From NCBI GenBank assembly GCA_002269645.1, contig NIVC01001879.1, positions 117,564-181,563 of the forward strand: a DNA stretch of 64,000 nucleotides. Reading direction: 5' to 3'. The translations under genes were made by a program, and so were the position numbers. The notes under the pieces are model-generated. The model did not search any database, was not told the origin of the DNA, and saw nothing but the letters and a program-made list of their open reading frames with translations. The number at the start of each line of letters is the position of its first letter. Positions within the stretch are counted from its first letter, which is position 1. Source of the DNA: Macrostomum lignano. Taxonomy: Eukaryota. This document shows positions 29,786 to 63,153 of this stretch, in pieces.

Positions 29786-31513
29786 ATGCCTGACGAGAAA
29801 CCAACCGCAGTCCACAAGGCAGCAATTCTGCTACCTGTTCAAGCCTGGCTGTCAAGCACATCTGCTCACGGTTTGAGCAGACTCTCTGGTCAGCGACCAA
29901 TCTACATCAAACTAATTTGGCTTCTGGTTTTCGCCTCATTCATGACGATCTTTGTCATCCAGGTGCAAGTCTTTGTGAACAAGTACCATGAAAAGCCGCA
30001 GACGACTACCCTACAGGAGGACTCGGTGGAGTTCGAGTTCCCGGACCTGGTCATCTGCAGCACGAACATTGTGTCAGGAAGTTATCCCTACTTGCTGGAC
30101 TCACAACAAGTGTCAGAAATCAACAGCTATGTGAATAAAACCAATGAACTTTTTGACACACCCAGTCGCCCATTTGCTTCACGTAAATTTGCCCAATCTC
30201 TGATGGCGACCCTGCCTTATCGGCTGCTGAGTGACAATTTAGGCCACAGAGCCGATCAACTTGTTCTGCGAAACGCAATCAATGGAATGGGTCGAGAAAA
30301 GGTTCACTTCAGCACCTTTTACAGCCCGTCCGAGCTTAACTGTGTCCGCTTCGAGCCCACAGATGAGCAGAGAGCAGCTCTGAGCATTGAGAACAATTAT
30401 CTGGAAATTATGTTGTTCTTGGATGGTACCTTCATCAAGTTTTCCAAGAAGATTGATATCGCTCCGGTGCCTTTGGAAAAGCAATCCGGTTTCGACTTTC
30501 TTACCTGGGATCTTACCTGGGGTATCAATTTGAAGGGTTGGAGTGGAGTCAACTTGTACTTTGCTAAACGAGGTCACTACCCGAGTCCTGACTCAGTTCT
30601 GCAGCTGAGCTCTGGAAAAGAGTACACAATTAACCTGGAGATGGAGAAGCTGACACTGTCCAAGGGGATGCAGTGCCTCTCTGATCTCGAGCCCATGAGG
30701 ATTGTTAGTCCGTACAACGGGTCCGAGACGGCTTACCAGTACAGCCAGTACCTTTGCCGCTCTGAGAGAATAAACGAGTTGTTGATGAAGCATAGCGGCT
30801 GCGTGAACCACCTGCTTCCGAGAAGCAAAAGATTCGAAAGCGCCCTCGGATGCATGAACACTAATGGACCACTATTCAAAAGTAACTATCAGAAATATAA
30901 TGCTCTATTGAACAGAAATGACCACTTTTACGGATCGCTTGACCAAAAGAAAATTCAAAGATACTGCAAAAATCGACGTCCTTGCGAAACATTTAGCTAC
31001 ACCCTCACGCATTCGTCTAGCACCTGGCCCAGGTTTTACTCGTCTAATCAAGTCACGTTACTAAGGAACCTTTTAAGGATAGTCAGAAAAGGTTGTAAAC
31101 CTAAAGAAACGCATCCCGGATACGTTGACTTGGCGTCTATCCTTATGGAGATGCTAGACAACATGACCACAGAACGCAGTCTAATGGGCAGCAACTATAT
31201 GCAGGACCAGCTGATGCGAATCAAGGTCAAAGCCGGAAAATCCTTTGGACCGACAGTCACAATCCAGCGCAGCTACGAGTTGGCTAACCTCGTGTCGGAT
31301 GCTGGCGGCATTCTGGGCCTCTACATGGGCTGCTCTCTGCTGACTGTGCTGGAGGTGCTCGAGCTGCTGCACGACTGCCTGCTCGGCTGCTGTTCCGTCT
31401 GGACCGGAGCCGTGGCGCCTCGGACAGGCGACGACGAAGAGGACAAGAACGATGCGGCCGGAAGGGGGACGCGCGGCAATACGAATGCCACTTTGGTGGT
31501 CGAGCAAGTCTAA
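29786..31513 (+). CDS. Intronless DEG/ENaC channel subunit copy 2 (575 aa, intact)
   Basis: HG motif, TM1, FPxxxIC, Cys-rich ectodomain, and TM2 SDAGGILGLYMGCSLLTVLE with a GxS filter and Ser at the degenerin site. Confidence 0.93.
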   Translation: MPDEKPTAVHKAAILLPVQAWLSSTSAHGLSRLSGQRPIYIKLIWLLVFASFMTIFVIQVQVFVNKYHEKPQTTTLQEDSVEFEFPDLVICSTNIVSGSYPYLLDSQQVSEINSYVNKTNELFDTPSRPFASRKFAQSLMATLPYRLLSDNLGHRADQLVLRNAINGMGREKVHFSTFYSPSELNCVRFEPTDEQRAALSIENNYLEIMLFLDGTFIKFSKKIDIAPVPLEKQSGFDFLTWDLTWGINLKGWSGVNLYFAKRGHYPSPDSVLQLSSGKEYTINLEMEKLTLSKGMQCLSDLEPMRIVSPYNGSETAYQYSQYLCRSERINELLMKHSGCVNHLLPRSKRFESALGCMNTNGPLFKSNYQKYNALLNRNDHFYGSLDQKKIQRYCKNRRPCETFSYTLTHSSSTWPRFYSSNQVTLLRNLLRIVRKGCKPKETHPGYVDLASILMEMLDNMTTERSLMGSNYMQDQLMRIKVKAGKSFGPTVTIQRSYELANLVSDAGGILGLYMGCSLLTVLEVLELLHDCLLGCCSVWTGAVAPRTGDDEEDKNDAAGRGTRGNTNATLVVEQV

Positions 31514-34500
31514 CAAAATCAGTGAATTACATGCATGCCATCGCTATAGTCTTGACTATTTTGTCGATCAATACGACAGCTTATTTACTAAGAATTCTAT
31601 TTTCTCTATACTACAGTATATATTGTTTACAAACTCGCAAAGCATCTCTATCCGGCAATCTGGCCCGCTCAAGGTTTGTATCTCTTCTCAGCTCTCTTCT
31701 CTCTCTTCTCTTTTCTCTCCTCTTCTCTCCATCTTCTGCTCCGTTGTCTCTTCTCTTCTTCTCTGTGCCGCAGCCATGCGCTGGGTTCCCTATCTGACCT
31801 TTGAGGTATATTATATTTACATTGTCAAACGTATCCCTGAGGTGAATATATGGTTACTTTGTGTTTTAAGGACAAATATAGATTGATTGACGCGCTCAGA
31901 TAGCATCATGTTAACCCCTAAAACGCAAAAATGGAATACAATTAAGATGTGTGTGCACTGTAAATTGATTTTCCATTACCAACATTTACGAAATTGCTGT
32001 ATGTGTGCCTGTGTGTAATTCATTTATATTAGATGCTGAGTTAACTGCTGCATGCTAGCTGATCAATATCTGCGTGTACTGCAAATTTTACATTCATATG
32101 GCTACTGCAAATTAAATACAGTATGGTCTTTAACCGCATGTATGACATATATAAGTATCGTACGCGAACATGCTGAAGTATCCTAAGTATCGAATTTCGA
32201 GCTACTTGCAATGTTTGCATCAGACCAACGAGTGTGGCAAATTTTGGTCCTGCTTACATGTATTTCTGTTTGCCGATGCACGGTAGCTAGCTCACAACTT
32301 AATAGTATACTGTAGTAATTCAATCAATAGACATGGATAATAAAATTATGCATTCAATTTAACGTAATTTGTTTGGTCAATGAATGCATTATTAGAAATG
32401 GTAGTCGCTAAACAGTAATGTAAATGGCATTAAGTTATAACTAATCGTACAATGCAGAGCGTTTGTTAAGAGTGCCTGCTTTTGTCAGCGTCCTCACTCT
32501 ATGCTGTCTAGTATTAGTAGTAGGAAACAACCCTTAACGTTTTTTTTGAAATTAGCAATTTATTGATTATCATTAAATATTTGTTCTAAGCTAGTCCGTG
32601 CCCTGCTCGGCCACTAACAATTGGCTGATTGGTTGTCATGCCATTCGCATCACACGACGTTATTTGTAATGTTAGCTTATATTTGTTAGCTCGAATGGCA
32701 AAGTTATAAAGTTAAGTTATGAATTCTAATAGCGGTAGGGTTCTATAGAGAATATGTCAATGTCAAGAGCTGGTCCAAGTAAATTAAAGACTAAATAAAT
32801 CTTAGAAAAAATTAATCCGACGATAAAGGTCCTGTGTACGATCCTCCAAACTCTTACGCCTAGACCGCGAACAAGCACACAGATGGGGAACACGACTTTA
32901 ATCAACATTTAATTTGATCACCAAAAATCACGACACATAAGAAATCACATAGAAACTAAAAATAAGTACAAGTAACGACACTGTCACAAGGGCCTCCATC
33001 CTTACTCCATGGCAACCGTGTCTAGCGTCCTGAAATCTAAATTCTTTTGCTTTATCGTGCAGGTACCGGAGAGCGACCCAATTGACTCTACAACACTCGA
33101 CCAGTTCCTCCGAAGACAGCTTGCAATTGTCTTCTGCTATGGCCTAATATACGGCCTGATGTGGCCTAATGGGCGAGGCATCTTACCGCTACCTCCGTGC
33201 AGCAAAGTCAAGTACATGTAGATGTAAGTCAGCTTGCTGATGGTAACTCCAGACTCAACTGTCCTTGGCTCTGTAATCAGACAGGACTTTCTTAACGCAC
33301 CCCCCAACTTGCCAGATGTGGCAGCCAACGAACGGCTCATTCGCTGAAATTTCACGTCGCATCCTTCCACTCCTGTATTTCTATCGTACACAGCTACCCT
33401 ATAATGGCATGATCTGAAACTCAGTAAGCTTAATTGAGCACTCGTGTCACCCTGGCTGCCTCGACGAAAAGTCTACTAATCACCGCTAAGAAGTATAAAA
33501 TAAAGTAATAATTAGGAAATTACGCTTTAGTTTAATTGGACAAGCAAGAGGTAAAATAATTGCTCATTTCATCTAATCGATACCGTAGAGATCCGTCCTT
33601 GAAAATATTCGACAGTATTATTGCTTTATCTCCATGCTTTCTTCGAACTATCTCCTAACTCTTCAAATAAACGAAGTATTGTAAGTAAAATCACGGATAC
33701 CAATTGTGAAACATTGGTAATTTTATGTTTGCATTGTAAAAAAGTCGTTTGTACGCTTTGTCGATTTCAGTCAGTCAATCGGTAAGTCACCCACTCACTC
33801 AAATCAGTCGCAGTCTTTACCTTAGAACAGTTTAGAACACTCTAGAATTTGACTTTAGGTAGCTCCGGTTTGTTCTTAAAGATACAGATATCTTTAAGCT
33901 CAGCAGTCGATGAAGAGGTTGTACATGTACATGTAGATGCCAGATTTTGAGCTGTTCATGTTACGAGGGTTTTAGTGTGTGGCAGGCCGAGGGTGGAGTC
34001 AAAGCCCGCGGCTGAATCCGTCGCTTCATCGTTGTGAATACCCGAGTGTCCTGGGATACTGCATTTTTGGTGCACGTCCGGAGAGCAAACAAAGAGATTT
34101 CTTCCAGATATTGCATGTACTAGGTGACCTGGCCAATTTACCCGGAGGTCGTTGCTGGATTTATTAACGGCTATAGGGCCAATCCGAATCCCAATAAGGC
34201 ATACAGACCGCCGCTCCAGTGGGGCTAAGAGACACTCACGAAGGCGCTGTTGCGGCTGATGATGGCACCATTCTAGACAGACGCAGTCAATGTTTTTCAG
34301 CAAGTTTTTAACTCCAGTCAGTTTGGTTCAGAGCCTGGCTTTGGTTTCAGTTCCTCCTATTAGTTGTCAACCTTTTTACCGGCACGACAGCAACAACAAA
34401 ATACGCTGTCAGAGTCTTTAGAATGCAGCCTCACAGCGTCACGCTCGCCCCGATCTTGAAGGCAGTACACAGCAGTCATGCGCGCGCCGAGTCTACACTT

Positions 34501-34889
34501 TCTTCGGCAGCTACTTCTATTTGTCCGTACCTTCGATGCCTCACAAGAAAAGCATAATTTGCCAGCTGCCGAAAAAATCTATCGCCGAGATAAATGCTAA
34601 AGCAATTAGAGTCTTGCTGGAAAGAGCCAAGGAGACAGTAGTTTTCGAATTGTTATACGGTTGGCACATTTAATTTTAATTGCTATTTAGACACTTGTGT
34701 CGATTTCAAGCAAAGAAGTCACCCAACACTAGACCGATGTCGCAGGCCAATCTCGGGGCGGCGACCCATGAGTTTTTCTATTTAGGCAAGGACGCTACAG
34801 AACCCAGGTAACTTTCGACAACCACTGCAAAGCTGTGTCGCCGCAAACTTGTAGCTCAACTCTGACTTAAGAATTTGTTTTGCAGCAAT

Positions 34890-35304
34890 ATGCATCACCG
34901 GATCATGATTGTCGCTTTCGTCTGCTTGGCTGCAGTGGCCATTGGTGGGGCCAGTGGTCGGCCGATGCCGAACGCTGCCGTCGACCAGCTGACCAGTCGG
35001 CTGACCAACCATTTCATGAGGGTCTTTCTGGTGCCCCAGCTGAAGCAGAACTTGCCTGCTGGTGAAAAATCTGCTAGCGATGCATCCAACAAAATTGAAT
35101 CCGTCGGCCGAATCAAGAAAGGTATGTGCACCTTTTTTTACCGTTGGACTCTACGCTTTGAAACTGCATTCGAATCTAGTCATATTGTATAATTGTTTAT
35201 TCATTTTTCTGTCTCCCACAGGTATGGAACACTATATGCACCGGCACTCTTACATTCCAATGTTCAACTTTCTACGCGGCGCGCTTCGCATCGAGCTGCA
35301 GTAA
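34890..35304 (+). CDS. Small secreted peptide/prohormone-like protein (104 aa, 2 coding exons)
   Basis: Exons 34890-35121 and 35222-35304 joined by a 100-bp GT-AG intron in compatible phase. Hydrophobic signal peptide MHHRIMIVAFVCLAAVAIGGASG. KK site before a C-terminal peptide GMEHYMHRHSYIPMFNFLRGALRIELQ. Acceptor TTTTGCAG just upstream of the ATG. Confidence 0.72.
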
Positions 35305-35719: not shown

Positions 35720-35918
35720 ACTTGTTCACAAAGACTTGCACCTGGATGACAAAGATCGTCATGAATGAGGCGAAAGCCAGAAGCCAAATTAGTTTGATGT
35801 AGATTCGTCGCTGACCAAAGAGTCTGCTCAAAGCGTGAGCAGATGTGCTCAACAGCCAAGCTCGAGCAGGTAGAAGAATGGCTTCCTCATGGACTGCGGT
35901 GTGTTTCTCGTCAGACAT
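35720..35918 (-). pseudogene. 5' fragment of DEG/ENaC (copy 4; N-terminus and TM1 only)
   Basis: High similarity to codons 1-66 of copies 1-3. HG is changed to HA. Homology stops abruptly after VNK. Confidence 0.88.
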
Positions 35919-36610: not shown

Positions 36611-39600
36611 TCAAACGCTACTGCAGTCAAATCTGATATCACTGAGGTTTGCAGGAAACTCTGCATTGGTATAATGCGTCATTTCGGCCACTGTTGCAGT
36701 CTCGTTTAGACCCGTGCTCAACTCTGAGCAACAACTGCTGCGTCCTCCGTTTATTACTGGCGAATTTTTATTATCAAGCAGCTTGCTGCAACACCAGAAG
36801 CAGCAGTTGTATCGGCTACTGTCGCTCGATTCACCTGTCGATCTCGAACTGGATGGTAACCGATGTCTCCTAGGCTGATTGCGCCTCGGATGATGGTGGA
36901 ACCTTCTAATTGTAGACTGCCTGTGCAAATAAGGCCTTCTACGGTTGTCACCGGCGGCTGGCAGTACCAAAGACTGAGTCCTCTTGTCAAACAGACTCTC
37001 CCCAATATCGTGCTCAACTAGATCGGCGCCCAACTCTTCGTGCTCTCGCGAGACGCGCAATCCGATGGTGAGGTCGATCAGCTTCAGCAGGACAAGCGAT
37101 GTGACCGCCGACCAGGCCACAATTGCAGCGACTGCGGCCAACTGAATGCCGAGCAGACGGAATCCGCCTCCCTGATGAAAGGTGCAAGTAATGCAGGCTG
37201 TTGTTGTTTTTGGTAAATAACACTAGTTTTGAGCCAGATAAACAAATTCAACCGATTTTTATCAATTATATAATCCATCAAAACAATATTAGCCTCCATT
37301 ACACCAACATTAGCATCCATTGCACCAACATTAGCCTCCATTACACCAACATTAGCGTCTATTACGCCAACATTAGCATCCATTACACCAAGATTAGCAT
37401 CCATTACACCAACAGTAGCGTCTATTACGCCAACATTACCGTACATCACACCAACATTAGCGGTCATTGCACCAACATTAGCGGTCATTGCACCAACATT
37501 AGCGTCTATTACGCCAACATTAGCATCCATTACACCAACATTATTAGCATCCATTACACCAACATTAGCATCCATTTCACCAAGATTAGCATCCATGACA
37601 CCAAGATTAGCATCCATTACACCAACATTAGCATCCATTACACCAACATTAGCATCCATTTCACCAAGATTAGCATCCATTACACCAACATTAGCATCCA
37701 TTACACCAACATTAGCGTCCATTACACCAACATTAGCGTCCATTACACCAACATTAACATCCATTACACCAACATTAACATCCATTACACCAACATTAGC
37801 ATCCATTACAACAACATTAGCGTCCATTACACCAACATTAACATCCATTACACCAACATTAACATCCATTACACCAACATTAGCGGTCATTACACCAACA
37901 TTAACATCCATTACACCAACATTAACATCCATTACACCAACATTAGCGGTCATTACACCAATATTTCTAAAGTTATGAAGTTCATATGAACCTAATGAAA
38001 TAACTTCAATCTTGACCTCTTTGATAGATCTACATGTTGGTGTAAGAGTCATAATATTTTTTCACTTGAATTCATCCATCCATAAGAAAGTCCACAGTCA
38101 CCTTCAGACAGTCTGTGAAAAAATCTTGAAAGTCCTAAGATAAACAGCCAGTTTTCCAAAGAAAACGACGAAGTTTACCAGTTCAAAGCCGGAAATCTCT
38201 TTCTTAGAAAACTGCTACATTCTCTTTAAAACGCAACTTTGAAGTTGTTATTTTGTTCTATAAAGTTCACAAAGTGAAATAACTCTAAGGGTAAGATTTC
38301 TTAGCATCCAGGGGTATAATGAAACGATTCCCTGGCGACGGACAGACTATTATCAATTCATATTCTTCAAAAGCACTCTATGCAGAATATGAATTAGTTT
38401 GAATCAAGGTTAAAAAATCAAATAGAAGAAGAGTTCTGGAATTTAAATTAGCTGCTTCAGATAGAAATAAAATCATTATTAGCAGAAATACAATAAAAAG
38501 GATGGGTTTACGTTGCATGAAAGGGGGGCCAGTTAACATACAGTAAGGGAGAGAAGGGGAGAGAGGAGAGATAGGTTAAAGGGCAAGAGGGAGAGGCAGG
38601 GTGAGAGGGAGAGAGAGAAGTCAAGAGGAGGAAAGATTGGGAGAGAGAGGGTGAGAGGGAGAGAGAGAAGTTAAGAGGAGGAGAGAGAGGGAGAGAGAGG
38701 GAGAGAGGGAGAGAGAGAAGTTAAGAGGAGAGATTGGTAGGGAGAGTGAGGGGTAAAAAGGAGAGTGACAGAGGACGACAAAGAGAATGCAGATTTAAAC
38801 CATGTAAGCCCAGTTCTCAGAATTCGAATTAAAAATTAATAAAAGCAGCTGACCAACCAACGGCTCACATAGAACAGTCCGCTGTGATTGGTTGGCACGC
38901 CGAGTACATTCCAGTCTCTGTCTGGCAGAGCCATCAGACCCGGCGCCAGCAGGCCCCATATTGCTGCGGTGAAATGCACAGCAATCACGCCTGCGGTGAG
39001 GTGGAAAATCGCTTTTATGGTGCATTTTTTTCTGTAAAATAGGTCTGTAGATTCATCGGTACATAAGATTATAGTGTCTTTACTTGCCTCTGTAGATGAG
39101 TCTGTAAATGATTCTATAGATGAGTCTGTAAATGGTTCTGTAGATTTGTCTGTAAATGATTCTATAGATGTGTCTGTAAATGTTTCTGTAGATGAGTCTG
39201 TAAATGGTTCTGTAGATGAGTCTGTAAATGGTTCTGTAGATGAGTCTGTAAATGGTTCTGTAGATGTGTCTGTAAATGATTCTATAGATGTGTCTGTAAA
39301 TGGTTCTGTAGATTTGTCTGTAAATGGTTCTGTAGACGTCTCTGTAAATGGTTCTATAGATGTCGCTGTAAATAGTTCTATAGATGTGTCTGTAAATGGT
39401 TCTATAGACGTCTCTGTAAATGGTTCTATAGATGTGTCTGTAAATGGTTCTGTAGATGTGTCTGTAAATGGTTCTATAGACGTCTCTGTAAATGGTTATA
39501 TAGATGTGTCTGTAAATGGTTCTGTAGATGTGTCTGTAAATAGTTCTGTAATTATGATTGTAAATAGCTTTGTAGATGTGTCTGCAAATAGTTCTGTAGA

Positions 39601-42600
39601 TGAGTCGGTAAATGGTTCTGTAGAAGTGTCTACAAGATTTACAAATGGTACAGTGTTTTTACGTCACCAAATGAAATGAAAATTAGTGGTTAAAAATAAC
39701 CTCAACGCACGCACCAACTGGATCGTCGATCTGCAGCCTAGCAACGATATTTTCTGTCAGGCAGGCCAGCAGAGCTCCAAGGACGCCGATCACGAATCCT
39801 TGCCAAGGTTCGGCGAGGGCGCACATGGCTACGATGGCGAAATGCCGACATGTCGGGTGTAGAATGGTAGATTGGTGTAGTATGTTGGTAGATTGGTGTA
39901 GTATGTTGGTAGATTGGTATGGTATGTTGGTAGATTATGGTGTGGTATGTTGGTAGATTTGTGTAGTAAGTTGGTAGATTGGTGTAGTAAGTTGGTAGAT
40001 TGGTGTAGTAAGTTGGTAGATTGGTGTAGTAAGTTGGTAGATTGGTGTAGTAAGTTGGTAGATTGGTGTAGTAAGTTGGTAGATTGGTGTAGTAAGTTAG
40101 TAGATTGGTGTATAAGATCGATGTTAGTTATAGCTGTTGTAATTTTGAATTCAGTCTGTAGATCTTCACTGTGCTCAAAGTGAAGGTACTCACCGGTAAT
40201 GGAAACTAGACTAGCCAAAATGCTATTAGTGATGAGGCTGATGTGAAACTTCCTGCCCCTAGTCAGATAGCTGAACATCATGCCGACCATTCCGCCTCCC
40301 ATTGAGGCTATGATGGTTGACACTGCGGATCTGAAAGTATGAAAAAAATTATATTGCGTAATAAATTTTCTAAAACTCTTTTAATTAGTAGATAATAATG
40401 TAACTGGCTACTCACCTGGCAGCCAGTTTCCATTTATCTCCACTGATGCCGAAGGTCGAACCGCAGTTGAATCCGAGCCAACCCCACCTGCAAAAACCAC
40501 TCAGTCAGCTGTGTCTAACAGGTGTCAAGTGTGTCTAACAGATGTCACACGTGTCTAACAGGTGTCAACTGTGTCTAACAGGTGTCAACTGTGTCTAACA
40601 AGTGTCAACTGTGTCTAACAAGTGTCAACTGTGTCTAACAGGTGTCAACTGTGTCTAACAGGTGTCACACGTGTCTAACAGGTGTCAGCTGTGTCTAACA
40701 GGTGTCAAGTGTGTCTAACAGGTGTCAACTGTGTCTAACAGGTGTCAACTGTGTCTAACAGGGGTCTACTGTGTCTAACAGGTGTCAACTGTGTCTAATA
40801 AGTGTCAAGTGTGTCTAACAGGTGTCATACGTGTCGAACAGGTGTCAACTGTGTCTAATAAGTGTCAAGTGTGTCTAACAGGTGTCATACGTGTCGAACA
40901 GGTGGCCAACTGTGTCTAACAGGTGTCAAGTGTGTCTAACAGGCGTCAACTGTGTCTAACAGGTGTCATACGTGTCGAACAGGTGGCCAACTGTGTCTAA
41001 CATGTGTCAAGTGTCTCTAACATGTGTCAAGTGTGTCTAACAGGTGTCAACTGTGTCTAACAGCTGAGCCACACGTGTCTAACAGGTGTCAACTGTGTCT
41101 AACAGGTGTCAACTGTGTCTAACAGGTGTCACACGTGTCTAGCAGGTGTCAACTGTGTCTAACAGGTGTCAAGTATGTCTAACAGGTGTCAAGTGTGTCT
41201 AACAGGTGTCAACTGTGTCTAACAAGTGTCACACGTGTCTAACAGGTTTCATACGTGTTTAACAGGTGTCACACGTGTCTAACAGGTGGCCAACTGTGTC
41301 TAACAGGCGTCAACTGTGTCTAACAGGGGCCACACGTGTCTAACATGTGATAGAAGGCTCTCTCACCACAGCATGAACATGCCCAGCAGTGCATTAGTCG
41401 GGCTGCCCATCTGAGGCGGGTGACTCCCTGAGAACCTGTGCAACCTCGGCCTCAGCAACAGGGTAGCAACCATACCGGTGGTACCGCCAACCAGGTGAAC
41501 AGGTCCAGCACCAGCAATGTCCATGCAATTCAATTTGTACAGAAAACCATTTTCAGACCACATCCAATGCGCCGGGAAACAGAAGATGAAGGTATTCAAG
41601 AAGCTGAAGAGCATGTACGCCTCTAGTTTAGTCCGTTCAGCCATGGCCCCAGAAACTATAGTTGTTGCTGTTGTAGCAAAAGACGCTTGAAAGAAGAATT
41701 TCGAATAGACCCATCCCGTGTCGTTCCTCTCGGCTGCAACCAGGAAGTTGCCCCAGCCGCTGAAGTCGTTTGCTAAATCGCTGTTGCCGAAGGAGAAGGA
41801 GTAACCAACCAGCCAATAGGACAGTCCACCGAATACCACATCCGCCACGTTCTTAACCATGATGTTCACCTCGTTCTTGGCGGTGCATGAGCCCGATTCC
41901 AGTAGGCCGAATCCTGCAATAATGTGGCGAAACCCGTGCTTCTAAAGTATCTAACAGGTCTTGATTCTGTATCTAACAGGTCTTGATTCTGTATCTAACA
42001 GGTCTTGATTCTGTATCTAACAGGTTTTGATTCTATCTCTAACAGATCTTGATTCTGTATCTAACAGATCTTGATTCTGTATCTAACAGGTTTTGATTCT
42101 ATCTCTAACAGATCTTGATTCTGTATCTAACAGATCTTGATTCTGTATCTAACAGGTCTTGATTCTATCTCTAACAGATCTTGATTCTGTATCTAACAGT
42201 TCTTGATTCTGTATCTAACAGGTCTTGATTCTGTATCTAACAGGTCTTGATTCTGTATCTAACAGGTCTTGATTCTGTATCTAACAGGTCTTGATTCTGT
42301 ATCTAACAGGTCTTGATTCTGTATCTAATAGGTCTTGATTCTGTATCTAACAGGTCTTGATTCTGTATCTAACAGGTCTTGATTCTGTATCTAACAGGTC
42401 TTGATTCTGTATCTAACAGGTCTTGATTCTGTATCTAACAGGTCTTGATTCTGTATCTAACAGATCTTGATTCTGTATCTAAAAGGTCTTGATTCTGTAT
42501 CTAACAGATCTTGATTCTGTATCTAGCAGGTCTTGATTCTGTATCTAACAGGTCTTGATTCTGTTTGTAACAGGTCTTGACCCTGTCTCTAACAGTTGTG

Positions 42601-43243
42601 TATCTAACAGCTAGGTCTCAGTTCTGTATCTAACATGCCTCTGTTGATTATCTAACAGGTCTCAGTTCTGTATATAACATGCCTCTGTTGTCTATCTAAC
42701 CGGTCTCTGTTCTGTATCTAACAAGTGTCAGTTTTGTATCTAACAGGTCTTTGTTCTGTGTCTAACAAGCCTCAGTTCTGTATCTAACAAGCCTCAGTTC
42801 TGTATCTAACAAGCCTCAGTTCTGTATCTAACAACTCTCAGTTCTGTGTCTAGCATGCCTCAGTTCTGTATCTAACAAGCCTCAGTTCTGTATCTAACAA
42901 GTCTCAGTTCTGTGTCTAGCATGCCTCAGTTCTGTATCTAACAAGCCTCAGTTCTGTATCTAACAACTCTCAGTTCTGTGTCTAGCATGCCTCAGTTCTG
43001 TATCTAACAGTTTTCAGTTCTGCAGTCTCATATCAAATCTCATTCCAGTTGTCATAGCGGGCTCCTGTCCTCGGGCGTCATAAACAGGCCTCATTCTAGG
43101 CGCTGAACCTACCAAAGACGACACTCACCGCTCTGCATAGTAAAAATGATAAAAGTGGCCGACAAGATCCATATTGCATCGCTCTGCGGTTCTGGCGAAA
43201 ATGCCACGGCTCTACTAGCGACATCTGACCTCCTTGCTGACAT
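36611..43243 (-). CDS. amt: Ammonium transporter (Amt/Mep family), 555 aa with first exon 1b
   Basis: Exons 43129-43243, 41367-41913, 40416-40487, 40194-40330, 39715-39828, 38869-38990 and 36611-37171, all GT-AG and in phase. Motifs MQSGFGLLESG, FFQASFATTATTIVSGAMAER, DIAGAGPVHLVGG, WWGWLGFNCGS, IDDPVGVIAVH (twin His present). Confidence 0.95.
37270..37965. repeat. 21-bp minisatellite (CCATTACACCAACATTAGCAT), Amt intron 6
   Basis: Direct tandem units. Confidence 0.93.
38540..38790. repeat. GA-rich low-complexity tract, Amt intron 6
   Basis: Purine-rich degenerate repeats. Confidence 0.8.
39085..39640. repeat. 24-bp minisatellite (TCTGTAAATGGTTCTGTAGATGTG), Amt intron 5
   Basis: Direct tandem units. 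Confidence 0.93.
39865..40110. repeat. 21-bp minisatellite (GTAGATTGGTGTAGTAAGTTG), Amt intron 4
   Basis: Direct tandem units. Confidence 0.93.
40510..41345. repeat. 20-bp minisatellite (TCTAACAGGTGTCAACTGTG), Amt intron 2
   Basis: Direct tandem units. Confidence 0.95.
41950..43010. repeat. 22-bp minisatellite (TCTAACAGGTCTTGATTCTGTA) grading into a related variant, Amt intron 1
   Basis: Direct tandem units. Confidence 0.95.
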
Positions 43244-47957: not shown

Positions 47958-47997
<40 letters not shown>

Positions 47998-49949: not shown

Positions 49950-52900
49950 TTAATCGATTCCGTGCATCAGCATCAGAATCCTCACTATGATGGCGCTCCA
50001 GCCGCCTTTATGCGCGGCGCCGTGGCCTCGGCCTGTGTCGCCATCGAAAGTTTCGTAGAATTGCAGGCCGCATCTGGCTTCCAAGCCCGTGCTGGGGATC
50101 ACGCCTGCGGCGGCATCGGTTAGGAGTCCAGGTGGGTGCGAGAGTACAGAGTCACGTGTAGCTGATCTCTTTTAAGCCTTGTTAAACCTCTGCCACCCTC
50201 ACCCCACTCCCTTCTCTGTCCCTCCCTCACCCCACTTCCCGTCTGTCCCTCCCTTACCCCACTCCCCGTCTGTCCCTCCCTTACCCACTCCCCGTCTGTC
50301 CCTCCCTTACCCCACTCCCCGTCTGTCCCTCCCTTACCCCACTCCCCGTCTGTCCCTCCCTTACCCCACTCCCCGTCTGTCCCTCCCTTACCCCACTCCC
50401 CGTCTGTCCCTCCCTTACCCCACTCCCCGTCTGTCCCTCCCTTACCCCACTCCCCGTCTGTCCCTCCCTTACCCCACTCCCCGTCTGTCCCTCCCTTACC
50501 CCACTCCCCGTCTGTCCCTCCCTTACCCCACTCCCCGTCTGTCCCTCCCTTACCCCACTCCCCGTCTGTCCCTCCCTTACCCCACTCCCCGTCTGTCCCT
50601 CCCTTACCCCACTCCCCGTCTGTCCCTCCCTTACCCCACTCCCCTCTCTGCCACAGCCTTGCCTCAGTAGTAAATTCTATTATTAAACAACATTTCTCAC
50701 CACTGGAATTCGGCAGAAACAACGCGGCATTCCTTGAGGCCAACTCTTGCACAATCTCGTTTATTAGTTTATAACGCCCAGAGTAGGATGGATATTCGAT
50801 TAGATCGAATTTCTTATCCAACACAGTGGACCAACGGTGCATGGCCTCCAGGAGCAGGTAGTTATAAGGGAGGTTAATCCCACCATACCAGTTGGTGTTG
50901 CCTCCGTACGAGCTGCTCACGGAAGCGCCTGGGCAGAATTCCTGACTCAAAGTGTAGCTAGCCAGCTTTTGCTGCTTAACTTCCGGTTCTGACAAAGAAG
51001 AATTTGTAGAAGATTCTCGCCGGCCCATAGACAGTCTGACGGAGGCCGTGTCGCAGGTATGAAGCATCGACATGGTGCGGATGCCGTATTGGGAGAGAAA
51101 CTGCACCTCACTTAGTACCTGAAAATAGGATGGGGACGTTAGGATAGGATATGAAGTTTACTTCCTCAAATCATTAAACAAAATCACTTAAACTTCCTCA
51201 GATCATTAAGCTTTCCCAAATCAATAACTTCCCCAAATCATTTAAATTCCTCCAATCAATTAAACTTTCCAAAATCACAAATTTTCTCCAAATCAATAAA
51301 GAACCTATTACCTGCTCCAGGAGCTCTGACAACTGTATCGAGTTAATAACGCTAACAAACAGCCTCGAATGACCGGCATCCGTGAAGACATACGGAGCCC
51401 TGGTCTCCCAGTCGCTCGAGCCATTATTAAACGCCCGAGCAAGCAGATCCTCAATCGTGTCACCTCCATCTAGCCGGACATTGGGCAGGCTGCAACAACA
51501 GATTATTGGCAAATAGCAATAGGCATGCAGCCAGGGACATCGATTGACAGTTTCCTCTCGACTGTCGCCGCTGTACACCGTCGAAGATGTCAGCAGACCG
51601 GACGACGAGCCTGTGAATCGTTCGACAACACCCGAGAAGCTGACACAACTGCCGTCAATAAAAGCGTTGCTCTCAATACTTTCCGATTGAATGCTACTAG
51701 GACGTCTTTGAGTCTCCTGCTGTTGCTGCTTGTTGTTGCGGCTCAAGTTGCTGCTGCTTCCACCTGAAACTTCGGACCAGAAGCCAACGTCCAGCCAGTA
51801 CGGATGGTAGAGTCCATTCTCTTGGACAACACAGCGCACAAACAAAGCGCAAAGTCTTCCTAGACTTTCAATCAGTTTTGGCAGGTTTATTTCTATTGTC
51901 GAGCGAAGGGCGGAGTCTCCGGGGCAAGTTGAGTAGATGGCCAAGGACAGCTCGAAAAACCTCTGGTTGGTTGAGTTGGAGTACATTTGTTTCTTTTCTA
52001 ATTCAACTTTATACTGAGCACTGAAATTGATCTAAATTTATCAAACTTGACACTAAACTCAATCAAACCTGAGACTACACTCAATCAAATTTGACACTAA
52101 ACTCAATCAAACCTGACACTTAACTCAATCAAATTTGACACTAAACTCAATCAAATCTGACACGACACTCAATCAACACTGACACTAAACTCAATCAAAC
52201 CTGACACTAAACTCAATCAAACCTGACACTACACTTAATCAAACCTGACACTAAACTCAATCAAATCTGACACTAAACTCAATTAAATCTGACACTAAAG
52301 TCAATCAAACCTGACACTAAACTCAATTAAATCTGACACTAAACTCAACCAAACCTGACACTAAACTCAATCAAACCTGACACTAAACTCAATCAAACCT
52401 GACACTAAACTCAATCAAATCTGACACCAAGCTCAATCAAATCTGACACTAAACTCAATCAAACCTGACACTAAACTCAATCAAACCTGACACTAAACTA
52501 AATCAAATCTGACACTAAACTCAATCCGATCTGACTCTAAACTCAATCAAACCTGACACTAAACTCAATCAAACCTGACACTAAATTCAATCCGATTTGA
52601 CACTAAACTTAATAAAAAATCTGACACTAAACTAAATCCGATTTGACACTAAACTCAATCAAATCTGACACTAAACTCAATCAAATTTGACACTAAACTC
52701 AATCAAACCTGACACTAAACTCAATAAAACCTGACACTAAACTCAATCAAACCTGACACTAAACTCAATCAAATCTGACACTAAACTCAATCAAATTTGA
52801 CACTAAACTCAATCAAACCTGACACTAAACTCAATCAAATCTGACACTAAACTCAATCAAATCTGACACTAAACCCAATCAAATCTGACACCAAGCTCAA

Positions 52901-55900
52901 TCAAACCTGACACTAAACTCAATCAAATCTGACACTATACTCAATCAAACCTGACACTAAACTCAATCAAACCTGACACTAAACTCAATCAAATCTGACA
53001 CTAAACTCAATCAAACCTGACACTAAATTCAATCCGATTTGACACTAAACTCAATAAAAAATCTGACACTAAACTAAATCCGATTTGACACTAAACTCAA
53101 TCAAACCTAACACTAAACTCAATCAAATCTGACACTAAACTCAATCAAATCTGACACTAAACTCAATCAAACCTGACACTAAACTGAATCAACTCCTACA
53201 CTAAACTCAATCAAACCTGACACTAAACTCAATCAAACCTGACACTAAACTCAATCAAACCTGACACTAAACTCAATCAAATCTGACACTAAACTCAATC
53301 AAATTTGACACTAAACTGAATCAACTCCGACACTAAACTCAATCAAACCTGACACTAAACTCAATCAAACCTGACACTAAACTCAATCAAACCTGACACT
53401 AAACTCAATCAAATCTGACACTAAACTAAATCAAACCTGACACTAAACTAAATCAAATCTGACACTAAACTCAATCCGATCTGACACTAAACTCAATCAA
53501 ACCTGACACTAAATTCAATCCGATTTGACACTAAACTCAATAAAAAGTCTGACACTAAACTAAATCCGATTTGACACTAAACTCAATCAAACCTGACACT
53601 AAACTCAACCAAACCTGACACTAAATTCAATCCGATTTGACACTAAACTCAAAAAAAATCTGACACTAAACTAAATCCGATTTGATACTAAACTCAATAA
53701 AACCTGACACTAAACTCAATCAAACCTAACACTAAACTCAATCAAATCTGACACTAAACTCAATCAAACCTGACACTAAACTCAATCAAACCTGACACTA
53801 AACTCAATCAAACCTGACACTAAACTCAATCAAACCTGACACTAAACTCAATCAAATCTGACACTATACTCAATCAAACCTGACACTAAACTCAATCAAA
53901 CCTGACACTAAACTCAATCAAATCTGACACTAAACTCAATCAAACCTGACACTAAATTCAATCCGATTTGACACTAAACTCAATAAAAAATCTGACACTA
54001 ATCTAAATCCGATTTGACACTAAACTCAATCAAACCTAACACTAAACTCAATAAAATCTGACACTAAACTCAATCAAATCTGACACTAAACTCAATCAAA
54101 CCTGACACTAAACTGAATCAACTCCGACACTAAACTCAATCAAACCTGACACTAAACTCAATCAAACCTGACACTAAACTCAATCAAACCTGACACTAAA
54201 CTCAATCAAACCTGACACTAAACTCAATCAAACCTGACACTACACTTAATCAAACCTGACACTAAACTCAATCAAATCTGACACTAAACTCAATCAAATT
54301 TGACACTTAACTGAATCAAATCTGACACTAAACTCAATCAAACCTGACACTAAACTCAATCAAACCTGACACTAAACTCAATCAAATCTGACACTAAACT
54401 CAATCAAATCTGACACCAAGCTCAATCAAATCTGACACTAAACTCAATCAAACCTGACACTAAACTAAATCAAACCTGACACTAAAAAAAAAAAAATCTG
54501 ACACTAAACTAAATCAAATCTGACACTAAACTCAATCCGATCTGACACTAAACTCAATCAAACCTGACACTAAATTCAATCCGATTTGACACTAAACTCA
54601 ATAAAAAATCTGACACTAAATTCAATCCGATTTGACACTAAACTCAATAAAAAATCTGACACTAAACTAAATCCGATTTGACACTAAACTCAATCAAACC
54701 TGACACTAAACTCAATCAAACCTGACACTAAACTCAATCAAATCTGACACTAAACTCAATCAAATCTGACACCAAGCTCAATCAAATCTGACACTAAACT
54801 CAATCAAACCTGACACTAAACTAAATCAAACCTGACACTAAAATAAATCAAATCTGACACTAAACTAAATCAAATCTGACACTAAACTCAATCCGATCTG
54901 ACACTAAACTCAATCAAACCTGACACTAAATTCAATCCGATTTGACACTAAACTCAATCAAACCTGACACTAAATTCAATCCGATTTGACACTAAACTCA
55001 ATAAAAAATCTGACACTAAACTAAATCCGATTTGACACTAAACTCAATCAAACCTAACACTAAACTCAATCAAATCTGACACTAAACTCAATCAAATCTG
55101 ACACTAAACTCAATCATACCTGACACTAAACTTAATCAAACCTGACACTAAACTCAATCAAACCTGACACTAAACTCAATCAAACCTGACACTAAATTCA
55201 ATCAAACCTGACACTAAACTCAATCAAATCTGACACTATACTCAATCAAACCTGACACTAAACTCAATCAAACCTGACACTAAACTCAATCAAATCTGAC
55301 ACTAAACTCAATCAAACCTGACACTAAATTCAATCCGATTTGACACTAAACTCAATAAAAAATCTGACACTAAACTAAATCCGATTTGACACTAAACTCA
55401 ATCGAACCTAACACTAAACTCAATCAAATCTGACACTAAACTCAATCAAATCTGACACTAAACTCAATCAAACCTGACACTAAACTTAATCAAACCTGAC
55501 ACTAAACTCAATCAAACCTGACACTAAACTCAATCAAATCTGACACTATACTCAATCAAACCTGACACTAAACTCAATCAAACCTGACACTAAAGTCAAT
55601 CAAACCTGACACTAAACTCAATCAAACCTGACACTAAACTCAATCAAACCTGACACTAAACTCAATCAAACCTGACACTAAACTCAATCAAACCTGACAC
55701 TAAACTCAATCAAACCTGACACTAAACTCAATCAAACCTGACACACACTTAATCAAACCTGACACTAAACTCAATCAAATCTGACACTAAACTCAATCAA
55801 ATTTGACACTTAACTGAATCAAATCTGACACTAAACTCAATCAAACCTGACACTAAACTCAATCAAACCTGACACTAAACTCAATCAAATCTGACACTAA

Positions 55901-58900
55901 ACTCAATCAAATCTGACACCAAGCTCAATCAAATCTGACACTAAACTCAATCAAACCTGACACTAAACTAAATCAAACCTGACACTAAAATAAATCAAAT
56001 CTGACACTAAACTAAATCAAATCTGACACTAAACTCAATCCGATCTGACACTAAACTCAATCAAACCTGACACTAAATTCAATCCGATTTGACACTAAAC
56101 TCAATAAAAAATCTGACACTAAACTAAATCCGATTTGACACTAAACTCAATCAAACCTGACACTAAATTCAATCCGATTTGACACTAAACTCAATAAAAA
56201 ATCTGACACTAAACTAAATCCGATTTGACACTAAACTCAATCAAACCTAACACTAAACTCAATCAAATCTGACACTAAACTCAATCAAATCTGACACTAA
56301 AGTCAATCAAACCTGACACTAAACTTAATCAAACCTGACACTAAACTCAATCAAACCTGACACTAAACTCAATCAAATCTGACACTATACTCAATCAAAC
56401 CTGACACTAAACTCAATCAAACCTGACACTAAACTCAATCAAACCTGACACTAAACTCAATCAAACCTGACACTAAACTCAATCAAATTTGACACTAAAC
56501 TCAATCAAATCTGACACTAAACTCAATCAAATTTGACACTAAACTAAATCAACTCCGACACTAAACTCAATCAAACCTGACACTAAACTCAATCAAACCT
56601 GACACTAAACTCAATCAAACCTGACACTAAACTCAATCAAACCTGACACTACACTTAATCAAACCTGACACTAAACTCAATCAAATCTGACACTAAACTC
56701 AATCAAATTTGACACTTAACTGAATCAAATCTGACACTAAACTCAATCAAACCTGCTACTAAACTCAATCAAACCTGACACTAAACTCAATCAAATCTGA
56801 CACTAAACTCAATCAAATCTGACACCAAGCTCAATCAAATCTGACACTAAACTCAATCAAACCTGACACTAAACTAAATCAAACCTGACACTAAAATAAA
56901 TCAAATCTGACACTAAACTAAATCAAATCTGACACTAAACTCAATCCGATCTGACACTAAACTCAATCAAACCTGACACTAAATTCAATCCGATTTGACA
57001 CTAAACTCAATAAAAAATCTGACACTAAACTAAATCCGATTTGACACTAAACTTAATCAAACCTGACACTAAACTCAATCAAACCTGACACTAAATTCAA
57101 TCCGATTTGACACTAAACTCAATAAAAAATCTGACACTAAACTAAATCCGATTTGACACTAAACTCAATCAAATCTGACACTAAACTCAATCAAACCTGA
57201 CACTAAACTTAATCAAACCTGACACTAAACTCAATCAAACCTGACACTAAACTCAATCAAATCTGACACTATACTCAATCAAACCTGACACTAAACTCAA
57301 TCAAACCTGACACTAAAGTCAATCAAACCTGACACTAAACTCAATCAAACCTGACACTAAACTCAATCAAACCTGACACTAAACTCAATCAAATCTGACA
57401 CTAAACTCAATCAAATTTGACACTAAACTCAATCAAACCTGACACTAAACTCAATCAAACCTGCTACTAAACTCAATCAAACCTGACACTAAACTTAATC
57501 AAACCTGACACTAAACTCAATCAAATTTGACACTAAACTGAATCAACTCCGACACTAAACTCAATTAAACCTGACACGAAACTCAATCAAATCTGACACT
57601 AAACTCAATCAAACCTGACAACTGCTTTGTCAAATTTAATTATCTATCTTACAAGACAAAAAATATCATTAAACTTGCCATAGCGAAGAACAGAGCCCAG
57701 ATCAGTCCTTCACCAGTTTCAACCAGTTCCCTAGGAAACAGTGACACGTAGTCAACACCGCAGATGCCGCCGTCGATCAGGGCGACACCGCGAGCATCTC
57801 GACGCTGCAGCCACCAGTCCAGATGGCGATGTAATCGATCATAGATCAGCGGTGCCATGCTTTCCTGCTCGTCTGGGTTGCACTTACTGATGAAAAGTTG
57901 TTTTTTAATGCTAAGATTATGACTGTTTTACATGCACCAGATCAGGGGGAGTTGTGGCAGGAATGGCCACTTATTCGAGAGGGGGGCTCTGGGCACTGCT
58001 GCAATTCAAAGCGGCAGTACGTACCAGCGAACCAGGCTCGATTCCAAGTGCAGCCACATTAATTCAGGGCTGAATTGGAATCTCGGCTTGGCTCTGCTCG
58101 TGCAATTAACGGCCTTGAGGGCCAACCCCCCAAGGCGCAGTGAAGTGTACATGCCTAACGATAAATAAAGTTAGGGCCGCTGTACACTCCTGTGTGTGTG
58201 TGTGCCTGTGCGTATGACTGCTCAGGGGGAGTCGGCAGAATGGGCATCAGTAATAATGCCTCTCGCCGGTTGTGACAATGTCACTTAAAGTGCGCCAGGG
58301 TGCACACAGCCGCCTTTGCCTAGTTAAAAGATGGTTACTAGGGATAATAATAATAATTTATTACACCTGCCTTAATAACCAGATGTGCAACCGACAGCTC
58401 AGCCGCAGCTATTGCGCGGCGCATCTGAAGGCTGCGTACGGCTGTTCAGTCCAAGGACTGGGGGGGGGGGGGGTCGCCACACACACCCTCAATTACCCAC
58501 AGCTAATGCTGGCACCCATTTTACAGCTGGGTGAACTTAAGCAATGCAGAGTTGAGTGTCTTGCTTAAGGACAAGATTTTTTTCCGAGTGAGTCGAGAAT
58601 CGAACTTCCGACCTTTAAGTCGTGAGTCCGACGCACTAGCCACAAGGCTACAACCCCTAAGAGCATTACTAGGGATGCTAGATGGAGAACTTCGAGATGC
58701 TGGAATAGGTATTAAGCATGCTATTAAAATCTCTCACCTGTACAAATCCACAGCGGCCAGTACAGACAGGGGAGGTGTCACACCCTCCGGTCGGTACTCG
58801 TCAGCGTACATGGATCCGTCCTCCCTAATCAATGCCATGAGCAGCATCATCTCATCAATTGCCTGCCTACGATCGAAACAGCTCAAACAGAGGCAATGCA

Positions 58901-60694: not shown

Positions 60695-61377
60695 CTTGCT
60701 AGCTACGTTAATATAAGACCAATTCCAAACGTTCTTTAAATTGTTTTTTCCCTCTCATCAATTTTTGCCTAAAAAACGGGTTTGTCCACAGACAATAAAC
60801 GCAATCGAAACTAGTATACTTTGTAGAAGCCGAGGTTTAGCTCAATTTGAAATTTACAAGCAAGTTTTTCAGTCAAAGCATGTTGACGTTCAATAAGAAA
60901 GTTCTCTATAACATCAACAATATGCCAGAATCATCCTATCAACAACGTCGGTCAAAGATGATCTTGTCATTAATTTTCCGACCATCAACTACACTCAGCT
61001 TTCTGTGCGGCCAGAGCTAGTGTGCTGGACAGCATTGGCAAAGCTGTCAAATACTGTTTCTCCGTGTTTCTTCCGACGTCTCGATTGAACACCCTCGTCC
61101 CCTTTGATTCATAGTCACATAGACAATTGACTTGATCTATGGATCCAGTTCGTCAATGGCACCATCAGCCAATGAAATAGCACGTAGTGTGCGGACAAGC
61201 CATCAACGTTGTAACAATGTACGCATTAGTTTGAGGAATTCCAAGTAGGAAAAACACGAGCCAATGAAATTTATCCAATCAGACCAGCTAGTTTTAGTAG
61301 TATGCAGACAATACACAATCATAAAGATAAGCTACGTCGCTAAATAGTCCATTGATTCTATCCTCTAAATCACGAAC

Positions 61378-63153
61378 ATGTCAGACAAGAAACCAACCGC
61401 AGTCCACAAGGCAGCAATTCTGCTACCTGTTCAAGCTTGGCTGTCGAGCACATCTGCTCACGGATTGAGCCGACTCTCTGGTCAGCGACCAATCTACATC
61501 AAACTAATTTGGCTGCTGGCTTTCACCTCATTCATGACGATCTTTGTCATCCAGGTGCAAGTCTTTGTGAAAAAGTACCATGAAAAGCCGCAGACGACTA
61601 CCCTACAGGAGGACTCGGTGGAGTTCGAGTTCCCGGACCTGGTCATCTGCAGCACGAACATTGTGTCGGGAAGTTATCCCTACCTGCTGGACTCACAACA
61701 AGTGTTAGAAATCAACAGCTATGTGAATAAAACCAAGGAGATGCTCGGTGAACCTCATCGTGAAGACATGGCCCGCAGTTTTGCCCAATCCCTGACGGCG
61801 ACTCTGCCTTATCGATTGCTGAGTGACAGCTTCGGTCACAAAGCCGACCAGATGGTTATAATAAACTCAATCAACGGATTTGGCGGAGAAAGGGTTCACT
61901 TCAGCACCTTCCACAGCCCGTCAGAGCTTAACTGTGTCCGCTTCGAGCCCACAGATGAGCAGAGAGAAGCTCTGAGCATTGAGAACAACTTCTTGCACAT
62001 AATCTTATTTCTCGATGCCACATTTTACAAGTTTCCAAAGACCTCAAAAATCTCCCCGGTGCCTATGAAAGATCAACCTGGTTACGATTTTCTTTCCTGG
62101 GATCTTGATGGAGGTTTGAATTTTCAGGATTCGAATGCTATAAATTTGTACTTCGCTAAACGAGGTCACTACCCGAGTCCTGACTCTGTTCTGCAGCTGA
62201 GCTCTGGAAAAGTGTACACAATTAACCTGGAGATGGAGAAGCTGACACTGTCCAAGGGGATGCAGTGCCTCCCTGATCCTGAGCCCATGAGGATTGTAAG
62301 TCCGTACAACGGGTCCGAGACGGCTTACCAGTACAGCCAGTACCTTTGCCGCTCTGAGAGAATAAACGAGTTGTTGATGGAGCAAAGCGGCTGCGTGAAC
62401 CACCTGCTGCCGAGAAGCAAAAGATTCGAAAGCGCCCTCGGATGCATGAACGCTAGCTGGGTTCATGAAAGAAACTTGACGTTGGCCAAATATATTGCGC
62501 TTTTAAAGATCTTCGAATCCATCGATCAAAAGGATATCCAACAGTACTGCAATGAGCGACGCCCCTGCAAAACTTCGAGCTACACTTATGCATATTCTTT
62601 CGGTGCCTGGCCTAGAATTTATTCGACTAATCAAGCCTCAATACTGAATAAAATCTTAGAACTGGTTAATAAATCCAATAAAAAGCATCCCGGATACGTT
62701 GACTTGGCGTCTATCCTTATGGAGATGCTAGACAACATGACCACGGAACGCAGTCTGATCGCGAGCAACTATATGCAGGACCAGCTGATGCGAATCAAAG
62801 TCAAAGCCGGAAAATCCTTCGGGCCGACAGTCACAATCGAGCGCAGCTACGAGTTGGCTAACCTCGTGTCGGACACTGGTGGCATTCTGGGCCTCTACAT
62901 GGGCTGCTCTCTGCTGACTGTGCTGGAGGTGCTCGAGCTGCTGCACGACTGCCTGCTCGGCTGCTGTTCCGTCGGGACCGGAGCCGTGGCGCTCGGACAG
63001 GCGACGACGAAGAGGACAAGAACGATCCGGCCGGAAGGGGGACGCGCGTCAATGCGGATGCCAGCGGCAACACTGGATGCCTTAATACTACTTTGGTCGA
63101 GCCTTTCGGTTAGGACGCGTATCATAAAAGTTGTTGACCTACTTGGAACTTGA
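61378..63153 (+). CDS. Intronless DEG/ENaC channel subunit copy 3 (591 aa; 1-bp deletion after TM2 alters the C-tail)
   Basis: Same motifs as copy 2. GCGCTCGG here versus GCGCCTCGG in copies 1 and 2 at about 62992 shifts the frame. The ancestral frame would stop at 63111-63113. Confidence 0.9.
   Translation: MSDKKPTAVHKAAILLPVQAWLSSTSAHGLSRLSGQRPIYIKLIWLLAFTSFMTIFVIQVQVFVKKYHEKPQTTTLQEDSVEFEFPDLVICSTNIVSGSYPYLLDSQQVLEINSYVNKTKEMLGEPHREDMARSFAQSLTATLPYRLLSDSFGHKADQMVIINSINGFGGERVHFSTFHSPSELNCVRFEPTDEQREALSIENNFLHIILFLDATFYKFPKTSKISPVPMKDQPGYDFLSWDLDGGLNFQDSNAINLYFAKRGHYPSPDSVLQLSSGKVYTINLEMEKLTLSKGMQCLPDPEPMRIVSPYNGSETAYQYSQYLCRSERINELLMEQSGCVNHLLPRSKRFESALGCMNASWVHERNLTLAKYIALLKIFESIDQKDIQQYCNERRPCKTSSYTYAYSFGAWPRIYSTNQASILNKILELVNKSNKKHPGYVDLASILMEMLDNMTTERSLIASNYMQDQLMRIKVKAGKSFGPTVTIERSYELANLVSDTGGILGLYMGCSLLTVLEVLELLHDCLLGCCSVGTGAVALGQATTKRTRTIRPEGGRASMRMPAATLDALILLWSSLSVRTRIIKVVDLLGT

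Follow-up and report, generated by a model that had tools for sequence, protein, structure and literature searches.

Probable partial concerted evolution of dispersed intronless DEG/ENaC paralogs in Macrostomum lignano

DEG/ENaC genes in the window

The window analyzed here is a stretch of 64,000 nucleotides from the flatworm Macrostomum lignano (assembly GCA_002269645.1, contig NIVC01001879.1, positions 117,564 to 181,563 of the forward strand). Coordinates given without an accession are counted from the first letter of this stretch. Three full-length intronless DEG/ENaC genes, designated copies 1, 2 and 3, and one 5' stub of a fourth copy were identified (Table 1). The three genes are mosaics of highly similar and strongly diverged blocks, a pattern which we attribute, with a probability of roughly three in four, to partial concerted evolution of dispersed intronless paralogs belonging to a lineage-specific DEG/ENaC clade.

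Copies 2 and 3 both match the Pfam profile PF00858 (ASC) from position 2 to position 455 of 455, with E-values of 9e-48 and 4e-44, respectively. The SAHG motif (amino acids 26-29), the FPDLVIC motif (85-91) and the GCS filter (515-517) located in the second transmembrane helix (TM2) are present in all three copies, and the conserved cysteines (residues 186, 297, 324, 339, 356 and 400) are present. Judged by sequence, copies 2 and 3 are members of the DEG/ENaC family and putative trimeric, amiloride-sensitive cation channels. A six-frame hidden Markov model (HMM) search of the window retrieved no DEG/ENaC pieces other than the three copies and the stub, and Rfam and tRNA scans of the whole window returned no matches.

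A preliminary description of this DNA, made from the letters alone and centered on positions 29786-63153, had treated the three genes as a working family. Copy 1 lies outside that range, and the state of the copies does not sustain such a view. An in-frame TAA occupies codon 462 of copy 1 (14096-14094), where copies 2 and 3 read GAA (Glu). This stop precedes β11, β12 and TM2, and the last constant block of the gene (C4, see below) carries five amino-acid changes private to copy 1, a probable pseudogene or null allele. In copy 3, one C is missing from GCGCC (leaving GCGC) at about 62991, so that the cytoplasmic tail is frameshifted. When this base is restored, the protein is 578 amino acids long, ends in TTLVEPFG followed by the stop, and displays a tail homologous to those of copies 1 and 2; the lesion could be a recent event or a homopolymer sequencing error. 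The stub is 89% identical to copy 2, with HG changed to HA and many other replacements, and its homology breaks off abruptly past ...GTGAACAAGT. With one nonsense copy, one tail frameshift and one 66-codon 5' stub, the cluster is turning over. Also in the C-terminal tail, 27 nucleotides are absent from copy 2 (at 31486/31487) and present in copy 1 (~13781-13755) and copy 3 (~63060-63086), the two versions of this stretch being ~68% alike.

Constant and variable blocks

The block map was established by means of an unsupervised two-state HMM applied to the differences between copies 2 and 3 and run without the coordinates proposed earlier. Four constant blocks (C1 to C4) alternate with three variable ones (V1 to V3), in essential agreement with the mosaic of the preliminary description. 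The borders formerly given for V2 and V3 are reproduced exactly. V1, described as spanning 30144-30300, is recovered as a block but with a 3' border placed at 30293. The constant blocks had been called almost identical; they are indeed alike, but the three-way alignment shows stretches of ~96% identity between copies 2 and 3 in alternation with stretches of ~60%. In C1, 96% identity is observed in every pair of copies. The clustering of the differences is far from random, as the variance per 30-nucleotide bin reaches 30.6 when the maximum obtained in 5000 permutations is 7.2. Third codon positions taken alone likewise exceed all 5000 permutations.

Table 1. Features of the window, with the differences between copies 2 and 3 and the GC content at third codon positions (GC3) of the blocks
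Feature	Position	Strand	Description
Copy 1	15479-13731	minus	DEG/ENaC copy with in-frame TAA
Copy 2	29786-31513	plus	Intact intronless open reading frame, 575 amino acids, both transmembrane helices
Copy 3	61378-63153	plus	DEG/ENaC gene, 1-bp deletion at ~62991, past TM2
Fourth-copy stub	35937-35709	minus	~20 nucleotides 5' of ATG and 66 codons (first transmembrane helix, TM1)
C1	copy 2: 29786-30144	plus	N-terminus, TM1, β1, β2, α1; 3.9% different; GC3 0.60-0.62
V1	copy 2: 30145-30293; copy 3: 61737-61885; copy 1: 15123-14975		34% different; silent-site divergence (dS) 1.0
C2	copy 2: 30294-30396	plus	β4-β5 region; 4.9% different; GC3 0.67-0.70
V2	copy 2: 30397-30553; copy 3: 61989-62145; copy 1: 14871-14715		35% different; dS 1.4
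C3	copy 2: 30554-30859	plus	β7-β9, thumb α4, conserved cysteines; 3.3% different; GC3 0.69-0.70
V3	copy 2: 30860-31110; copy 3: 62452-62684; copy 1: 14408-14158		46% different; dS 2.2
C4	copy 2: 31111-31416	plus	Two extra knuckle-region helices, β11, β12, TM2; 4.2% different; GC3 0.74-0.77
5' flank common to copies 1 and 2 only	copy 2: 29310-29785; copy 1: 15946-15480		444 aligned nucleotides
Ammonium-transporter (Amt) gene	44556-39713	minus	Multi-exon, between copies 2 and 3

Silent-site divergence, selection and base composition

The NG86 dS between copies 2 and 3 amounts to 0.106 in the constant blocks (bootstrap confidence interval, CI, 0.066-0.152) and to 1.45 in the variable blocks (CI 0.94-3.96), with no overlap of the intervals. 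Among the codons specifying the same amino acid in both copies, 21/322 (6.5%) differ silently in the constant blocks and 39/89 (44%) in the variable ones (Fisher 1.5e-15). The divergence is therefore not uniform along the gene, and the earlier observation that the switch between blocks extends to silent sites is borne out by a 14-fold contrast. The dN/dS ratio (ω) is ~0.25 in both classes of blocks (upper bounds of the CI, 0.42 and 0.40). The variable blocks are therefore to be regarded as old and constrained, and neither relaxed nor positively selected.

A second contrast is found in base composition. In each copy, the constant blocks have a GC3 of 0.67-0.69, as opposed to 0.41-0.47 for the variable ones (P 1e-7 to 1e-9), the GC content at the first two codon positions is similar in both, and the flanks have a GC content of 0.37-0.45. 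Codon bias linked to expression is expected to affect a whole transcript. A block-wise excess of GC3, unlike such a bias, is a prediction of long-term GC-biased conversion. Two individual blocks of copy 3 deviate in opposite directions: GC3 of V1 (61737-61885) is 0.55, compared to 0.34-0.40 in copies 1 and 2, and that of V2 is 0.42, compared to 0.53-0.57. These opposite shifts may result from exchange with partners beyond the window.

The blocks were also compared to 65 distant homologs. In this set, conservation is on average slightly lower in the variable blocks, and gaps are more frequent there. Several stretches of the constant blocks (amino acids 106-120, 301-315 and 451-465) are nevertheless as variable as the variable blocks, and V3 includes the well-conserved β10 strand. 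The mosaic does not simply track the constraint acting on the protein family as a whole.

Relationships among the copies

Copies 1 and 2 are 97-98% identical in their constant blocks, with a dS of 0.075. In the variable blocks of this pair, dS equals 0.066 for V2, 0.36 for V1 and 0.53 for V3 (CI 0.30-0.93). The preliminary description stated that these two copies share V2 and most of V1 and carry clearly different V3 segments. Sharing is confirmed for V2, while V1 stands moderately apart; V3 is likewise moderately diverged but does not constitute a separate cassette, since V1 and V3 of both copies are 78-86% identical and belong to one lineage, distinct from the kind found in copy 3. The diverged tracts of copies 1 and 2 cover 30156-30274 and 30894-31134 in copy 2 coordinates, both having borders that differ from those observed between copies 2 and 3 (30860-31110 in the V3 region). 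Such pair-specific borders are as expected of independent conversion tracts. Differences specific to copy 1 are also found on both sides of V3, at 30823 and 30854, then at 31123, 31129 and 31134.

All three variable blocks support the grouping ((1,2),3), with site patterns of 36/6/8 for V1, 52/0/1 for V2 and 67/19/17 for V3. In the constant blocks, 29 sites unite copies 1 and 2, 14 unite copies 2 and 3, and 14 unite copies 1 and 3, so that the copies are nearly equidistant.

The ~480 nucleotides upstream of copies 1 and 2 are 84% identical (Jukes-Cantor distance K = 0.18) and thus more diverged than the constant blocks of the same two genes. The similarity of copy 3 to the other copies begins ~3 nucleotides 5' of the ATG, continues past C4 and stops at about 31490 in copy 2 and 63063 in copy 3, beyond which the flanks are unalignable. 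Because the flanks of copy 3 are unrelated to the others, its locus is an old one, in which the 96% identity of the constant blocks arose secondarily.

Structural location of the variable blocks

AlphaFold (AF2) models were obtained with a pLDDT of 84.7 and a pTM of 0.81 for copy 2, and of 88.4 and 0.85 for copy 3. Both display TM1, β1-β12, α1-α6 and TM2 in the canonical order of the family, whose two transmembrane helices enclose a large, cysteine-rich extracellular domain made up of palm, β-ball, finger, thumb and knuckle. According to the copy 2 model, V1 (residues 120-170) contains the final turn of α1, followed by α2, α3, a short helix and β3; V2 (204-256) contains β6 together with the long β6-β7 loop, which is modeled with low confidence; and V3 (359-442) contains thumb α5, β10 and knuckle α6. 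As far as secondary-structure elements are concerned, the domain mapping formerly done by eye is thus borne out. The modeled islands of copies 2 and 3 possess the same helices and strands; most of the difference between them lies in the β6-β7 loop and in α5, which varies in length.

When copy 2 was submitted to Foldseek, FaNaC1 of Malacoceros and the Aplysia FaNaC ranked first (TM scores 0.64-0.69, 18-19% identity), followed by ASICs. This lead is narrow. FaNaC, ASIC and ENaC are matched at E-values down to 1e-24, and the profile match to FaNaC reflects the whole alignment. In FaNaC1, α1-α3a and the β6-β7 loop make up the FMRFamide pocket together with α6 from the adjoining subunit (PMC11026163). 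Upon sequence alignment, the pocket segments fall within V1, V2 and V3, and the islands, as modeled, include counterparts of all three pocket elements. They are however far larger than the pocket, and α1 sits in constant block C1.

Evolutionary interpretation

The proposed course of partial concerted evolution can be summarized as follows. The copy 3 locus would have parted from the lineage of copies 1 and 2 long ago, because dS reaches 1-2 in the variable blocks and the flanks are unalignable, and copies 1 and 2 would have split later. Recurrent, GC-biased and non-reciprocal interlocus gene conversion would since hold four blocks ~96% alike in the three copies: from the N-terminus to α1, β4-β5, β7-α4, and from the distal knuckle helices to TM2. 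Three islands (α2-α3/β3, β6 with the β6-β7 loop, and α5-β10-α6) would have left this exchange early and would have evolved from then on as separate variants under purifying selection. Conversion is not expected between sequences that are just ~60% identical, from which we infer that the constant blocks were exchanged almost continuously and that the islands dropped out early. The islands may persist because conversion would erase functionally distinct sensing surfaces, and a divergence of ~40% would in any case no longer permit heteroduplex extension. Segmental conversion with retention of old segments, as put forward in the preliminary description, is supported by the silent-site contrast, the unrelated flanks of copy 3 and the GC3 of the constant blocks.

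Several points weigh against this interpretation. Classic proof of concerted evolution consists of constant blocks that cluster by species and variable blocks that cluster by locus; the evidence presented here comes from three copies in a single window. The V3 dS between copies 1 and 2 exceeds the divergence of their shared flank, and a V3 older than its flank is not predicted by plain duplication followed by homogenization. V3 may have been imported from another paralog, or the 5' flank may have been partly converted. Within the constant blocks, a runs test for clustered site patterns was not significant (P = 0.14). The contrast in GC3 could stem in part from selection for translational accuracy at conserved residues. 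That the islands are selected for distinct functions, finally, is our own supposition.

The strongest competitor, although an unlikely one, is an exchange of cassettes. According to this scheme, many paralogs exist in the genome and V1, V2 and V3 were moved among them; the short conversion tracts involved would have had their anchors in the constant blocks, which would supply the homology required for the transfers. New combinations of variable blocks would result, with broken copies as possible donors. The age of V3 relative to the flank (lower CI limit of 0.30 as opposed to 0.18) agrees with this scheme, as do the differences specific to copy 1 that bracket V3, as if a slightly larger tract had been pasted in, and the elevated GC3 of V1 in copy 3. 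On the other hand, the three variable blocks share a single grouping of the copies, a comparison in which three copies provide little power. Neither stray cassettes nor extra copies were retrieved from the 64 kb by the six-frame search, and repeated or shared motifs were looked for at the block borders and not found. The borders moreover vary between gene pairs, and the unrelated flanks of copy 3 are better explained by an old locus than by a recent copy carrying swapped cassettes. The earlier proposal of reshuffled, combinatorial cassettes accordingly receives no support from the window, as the common grouping was recovered for every variable block and neither donors nor border motifs were found. 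An extended version, which we consider more doubtful still, would have the three copies sample a larger genome-wide family in which finger, β6-β7-loop and thumb/knuckle cassettes are exchangeable on a scaffold homogenized by conversion, copy 1 and the stub being donors. Such a family, if real, would amount to a combinatorial repertoire of ligand-gated channels, multiplied by heterotrimer assembly.

An artefact of assembly or polishing, by which reads from different paralogs or haplotypes would have been merged into chimeras, is very improbable. The region is rich in repeats, and the loss of one base from a CC run in copy 3 is a common type of long-read error. The three copies are however found at distinct places with distinct flanks, one of them being inverted; their constant blocks reach 95-97% identity but are not the same, and differences specific to one copy are scattered through them; and the variable blocks hold open frames that fold confidently in the AF2 models.

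Even less credence can be given to a derivation of the genes from retrocopies of alternatively spliced mRNAs, in which variable blocks would represent mutually exclusive exons and constant blocks shared ones. The DEG/ENaC copies are intronless while the neighboring Amt gene has introns, and the similarity between copies 2 and 3 is confined to coding sequence. Three M. lignano relatives, P0002, P0003 and P0004, were examined and contain zero, one or two introns. Intron 1 of P0002 (NIVC01000514.1 11104-11172), which is absent from P0003 and P0004, maps to codon 355/356 of copy 2 (nucleotide 30851), inside the margin of uncertainty (30817-30860) of the 5' border of V3. Yet the intron that P0002 and P0004 have in common lies at codon ~457 of copy 2, 45 nucleotides past the end of V3, and the V1 and V2 borders lack introns in the three relatives. 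As the main explanation, alternative exons were thus rejected: of the six borders, a single one agrees with an intron position, another clearly disagrees and the other four are without an intron. P0003 is itself intronless, so that a paucity of introns is a trait of the clade. Neither a poly(A) tract nor a shared 3' untranslated region was found downstream, the block borders differ by gene pair, and copies 1 and 2 share their upstream sequence at 84% identity next to constant blocks at 97-98%.

That all the blocks are equally young, the variable ones being mutation hot-spots or relaxed loops (as their slightly lower conservation and more frequent gaps among distant homologs might suggest) or the constant ones being held by silent-site constraint, has very little probability: hot-spots and relaxed loops are ruled out by the ω of ~0.25, by the near-identity of V2 between copies 1 and 2 while V1 and V3 differ, unlike a fixed hot-spot, and by the unalignable flanks of an old copy 3 locus; β10 is conserved inside V3, some constant stretches vary family-wide, and silent-site constraint across ~1070 nucleotides is unlikely.

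Partial concerted evolution would make this locus an unusually clean natural case, with a 14-fold silent-site contrast and a signature of GC bias limited to the converted blocks. The islands appear to mark the surfaces at which peptides bind in FaNaC and ASIC/HyNaC and represent putative sensing modules. The copies may hence be regarded as natural chimeras, in which nearly the same pore and scaffold carry differing putative sensing modules, and could offer a route to the gating stimulus of an orphan flatworm DEG/ENaC clade and to the modules that set its specificity.

Genomic neighborhood

One exon of the Amt gene is 85% identical to an M. lignano protein, the next best match being 67% identical. 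The introns of this gene are filled with minisatellites of 20-22 bp (40504-41349 and 41947-43010). Minisatellite arrays also pack the window as a whole (17545-20939, 22746-25295, 37273-37965, 39089-39631, 52040-57620 and others), with units of 20-27 bp in up to 253 copies, and give rise to many spurious long open reading frames. Strand skew is extreme in some of these arrays, the GC skew reaching -0.68 at 52-56 kb. The first 993 positions of the window are occupied by a higher-order tandem repeat, in which a 24-nucleotide unit is organized in a 396-nucleotide period with 97% identity; it contains an open frame of SVSDTPSF-like repeats that runs off the window start. The open reading frame at 7683-8297 encodes an IS1595/ISXO2-like (Merlin-type) DDE transposase domain (E 7e-16) and is probably a transposon remnant.

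Comparison with known systems

The closest relatives of these channels are found in the same species. In a search of 1.84 billion representative proteins, the seven best relatives all originate from M. lignano and are 26-33% identical. They include PAA81733.1, PAA90405.1 and PAA58710.1, which are 566-572 amino acids long with few or zero introns. Their length is similar to that of the copies described here, but identity remains at 26-33% even though the neighboring Amt exon reaches 85%. The channel clade is lineage-specific or fast-evolving. Nothing was retrieved by a search with copy 2 in a set of 5.8 billion proteins or by scanning metagenomes for a 38-mer of block C4. Near-identical DEG/ENaC duplicates of M. 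lignano display scattered changes, and no mosaic was found in them.

The structural resemblance to FaNaC (Malacoceros FaNaC1, 8ON7-8ONA; Aplysia FaNaC, 7YVB), the best Foldseek matches, consists of the DEG/ENaC fold and of islands with elements equivalent to α2-α3, the β6-β7 loop and α6. In addition to the low identity and to the constant location of α1, the islands differ in that they also contain β3, β6, α5 and β10, none of which is a pocket element. The M. lignano DEG/ENaCs assayed so far lie near the FaNaC branch, in a clade other than that of the present copies, and produced no peptide currents (PMC9234716). Peptides also bind to the acidic pocket of ASIC/HyNaC, which is bordered by thumb α5 and the finger (PMC11474038). 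The presence of α5 in V3 and of finger helices in V1 recalls this arrangement, by general DEG/ENaC topology only.

Peaks of divergence between paralogs subjected to gene conversion are an established pattern, exemplified by the primate red/green opsins, RHD/RHCE, the clustered protocadherins, Tigriopus GOT1 and Arabidopsis halleri HMA4; in these cases, the stretches of high divergence mark function-determining sites (PMC3924837; PMC3728101; bioRxiv 10.1101/2025.10.29.685298). Literature searches retrieved no earlier account of DEG/ENaC genes undergoing gene conversion or concerted evolution. The genes of the window share with the known systems the nearby and mostly homogenized paralogs, the sharply bounded divergent stretches and the signature of GC bias. 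They differ from them in being intronless ion-channel genes with three islands of 150-250 nucleotides each, in having one partner inverted and another 30 kb away beyond a different gene, and in that selection on the islands is presumed here. The contrast is also very large, with a dS of about 0.1 as opposed to 1-2. The proposed mechanism is not a new one, and the M. lignano locus would illustrate a known process of evolution in a clean form.

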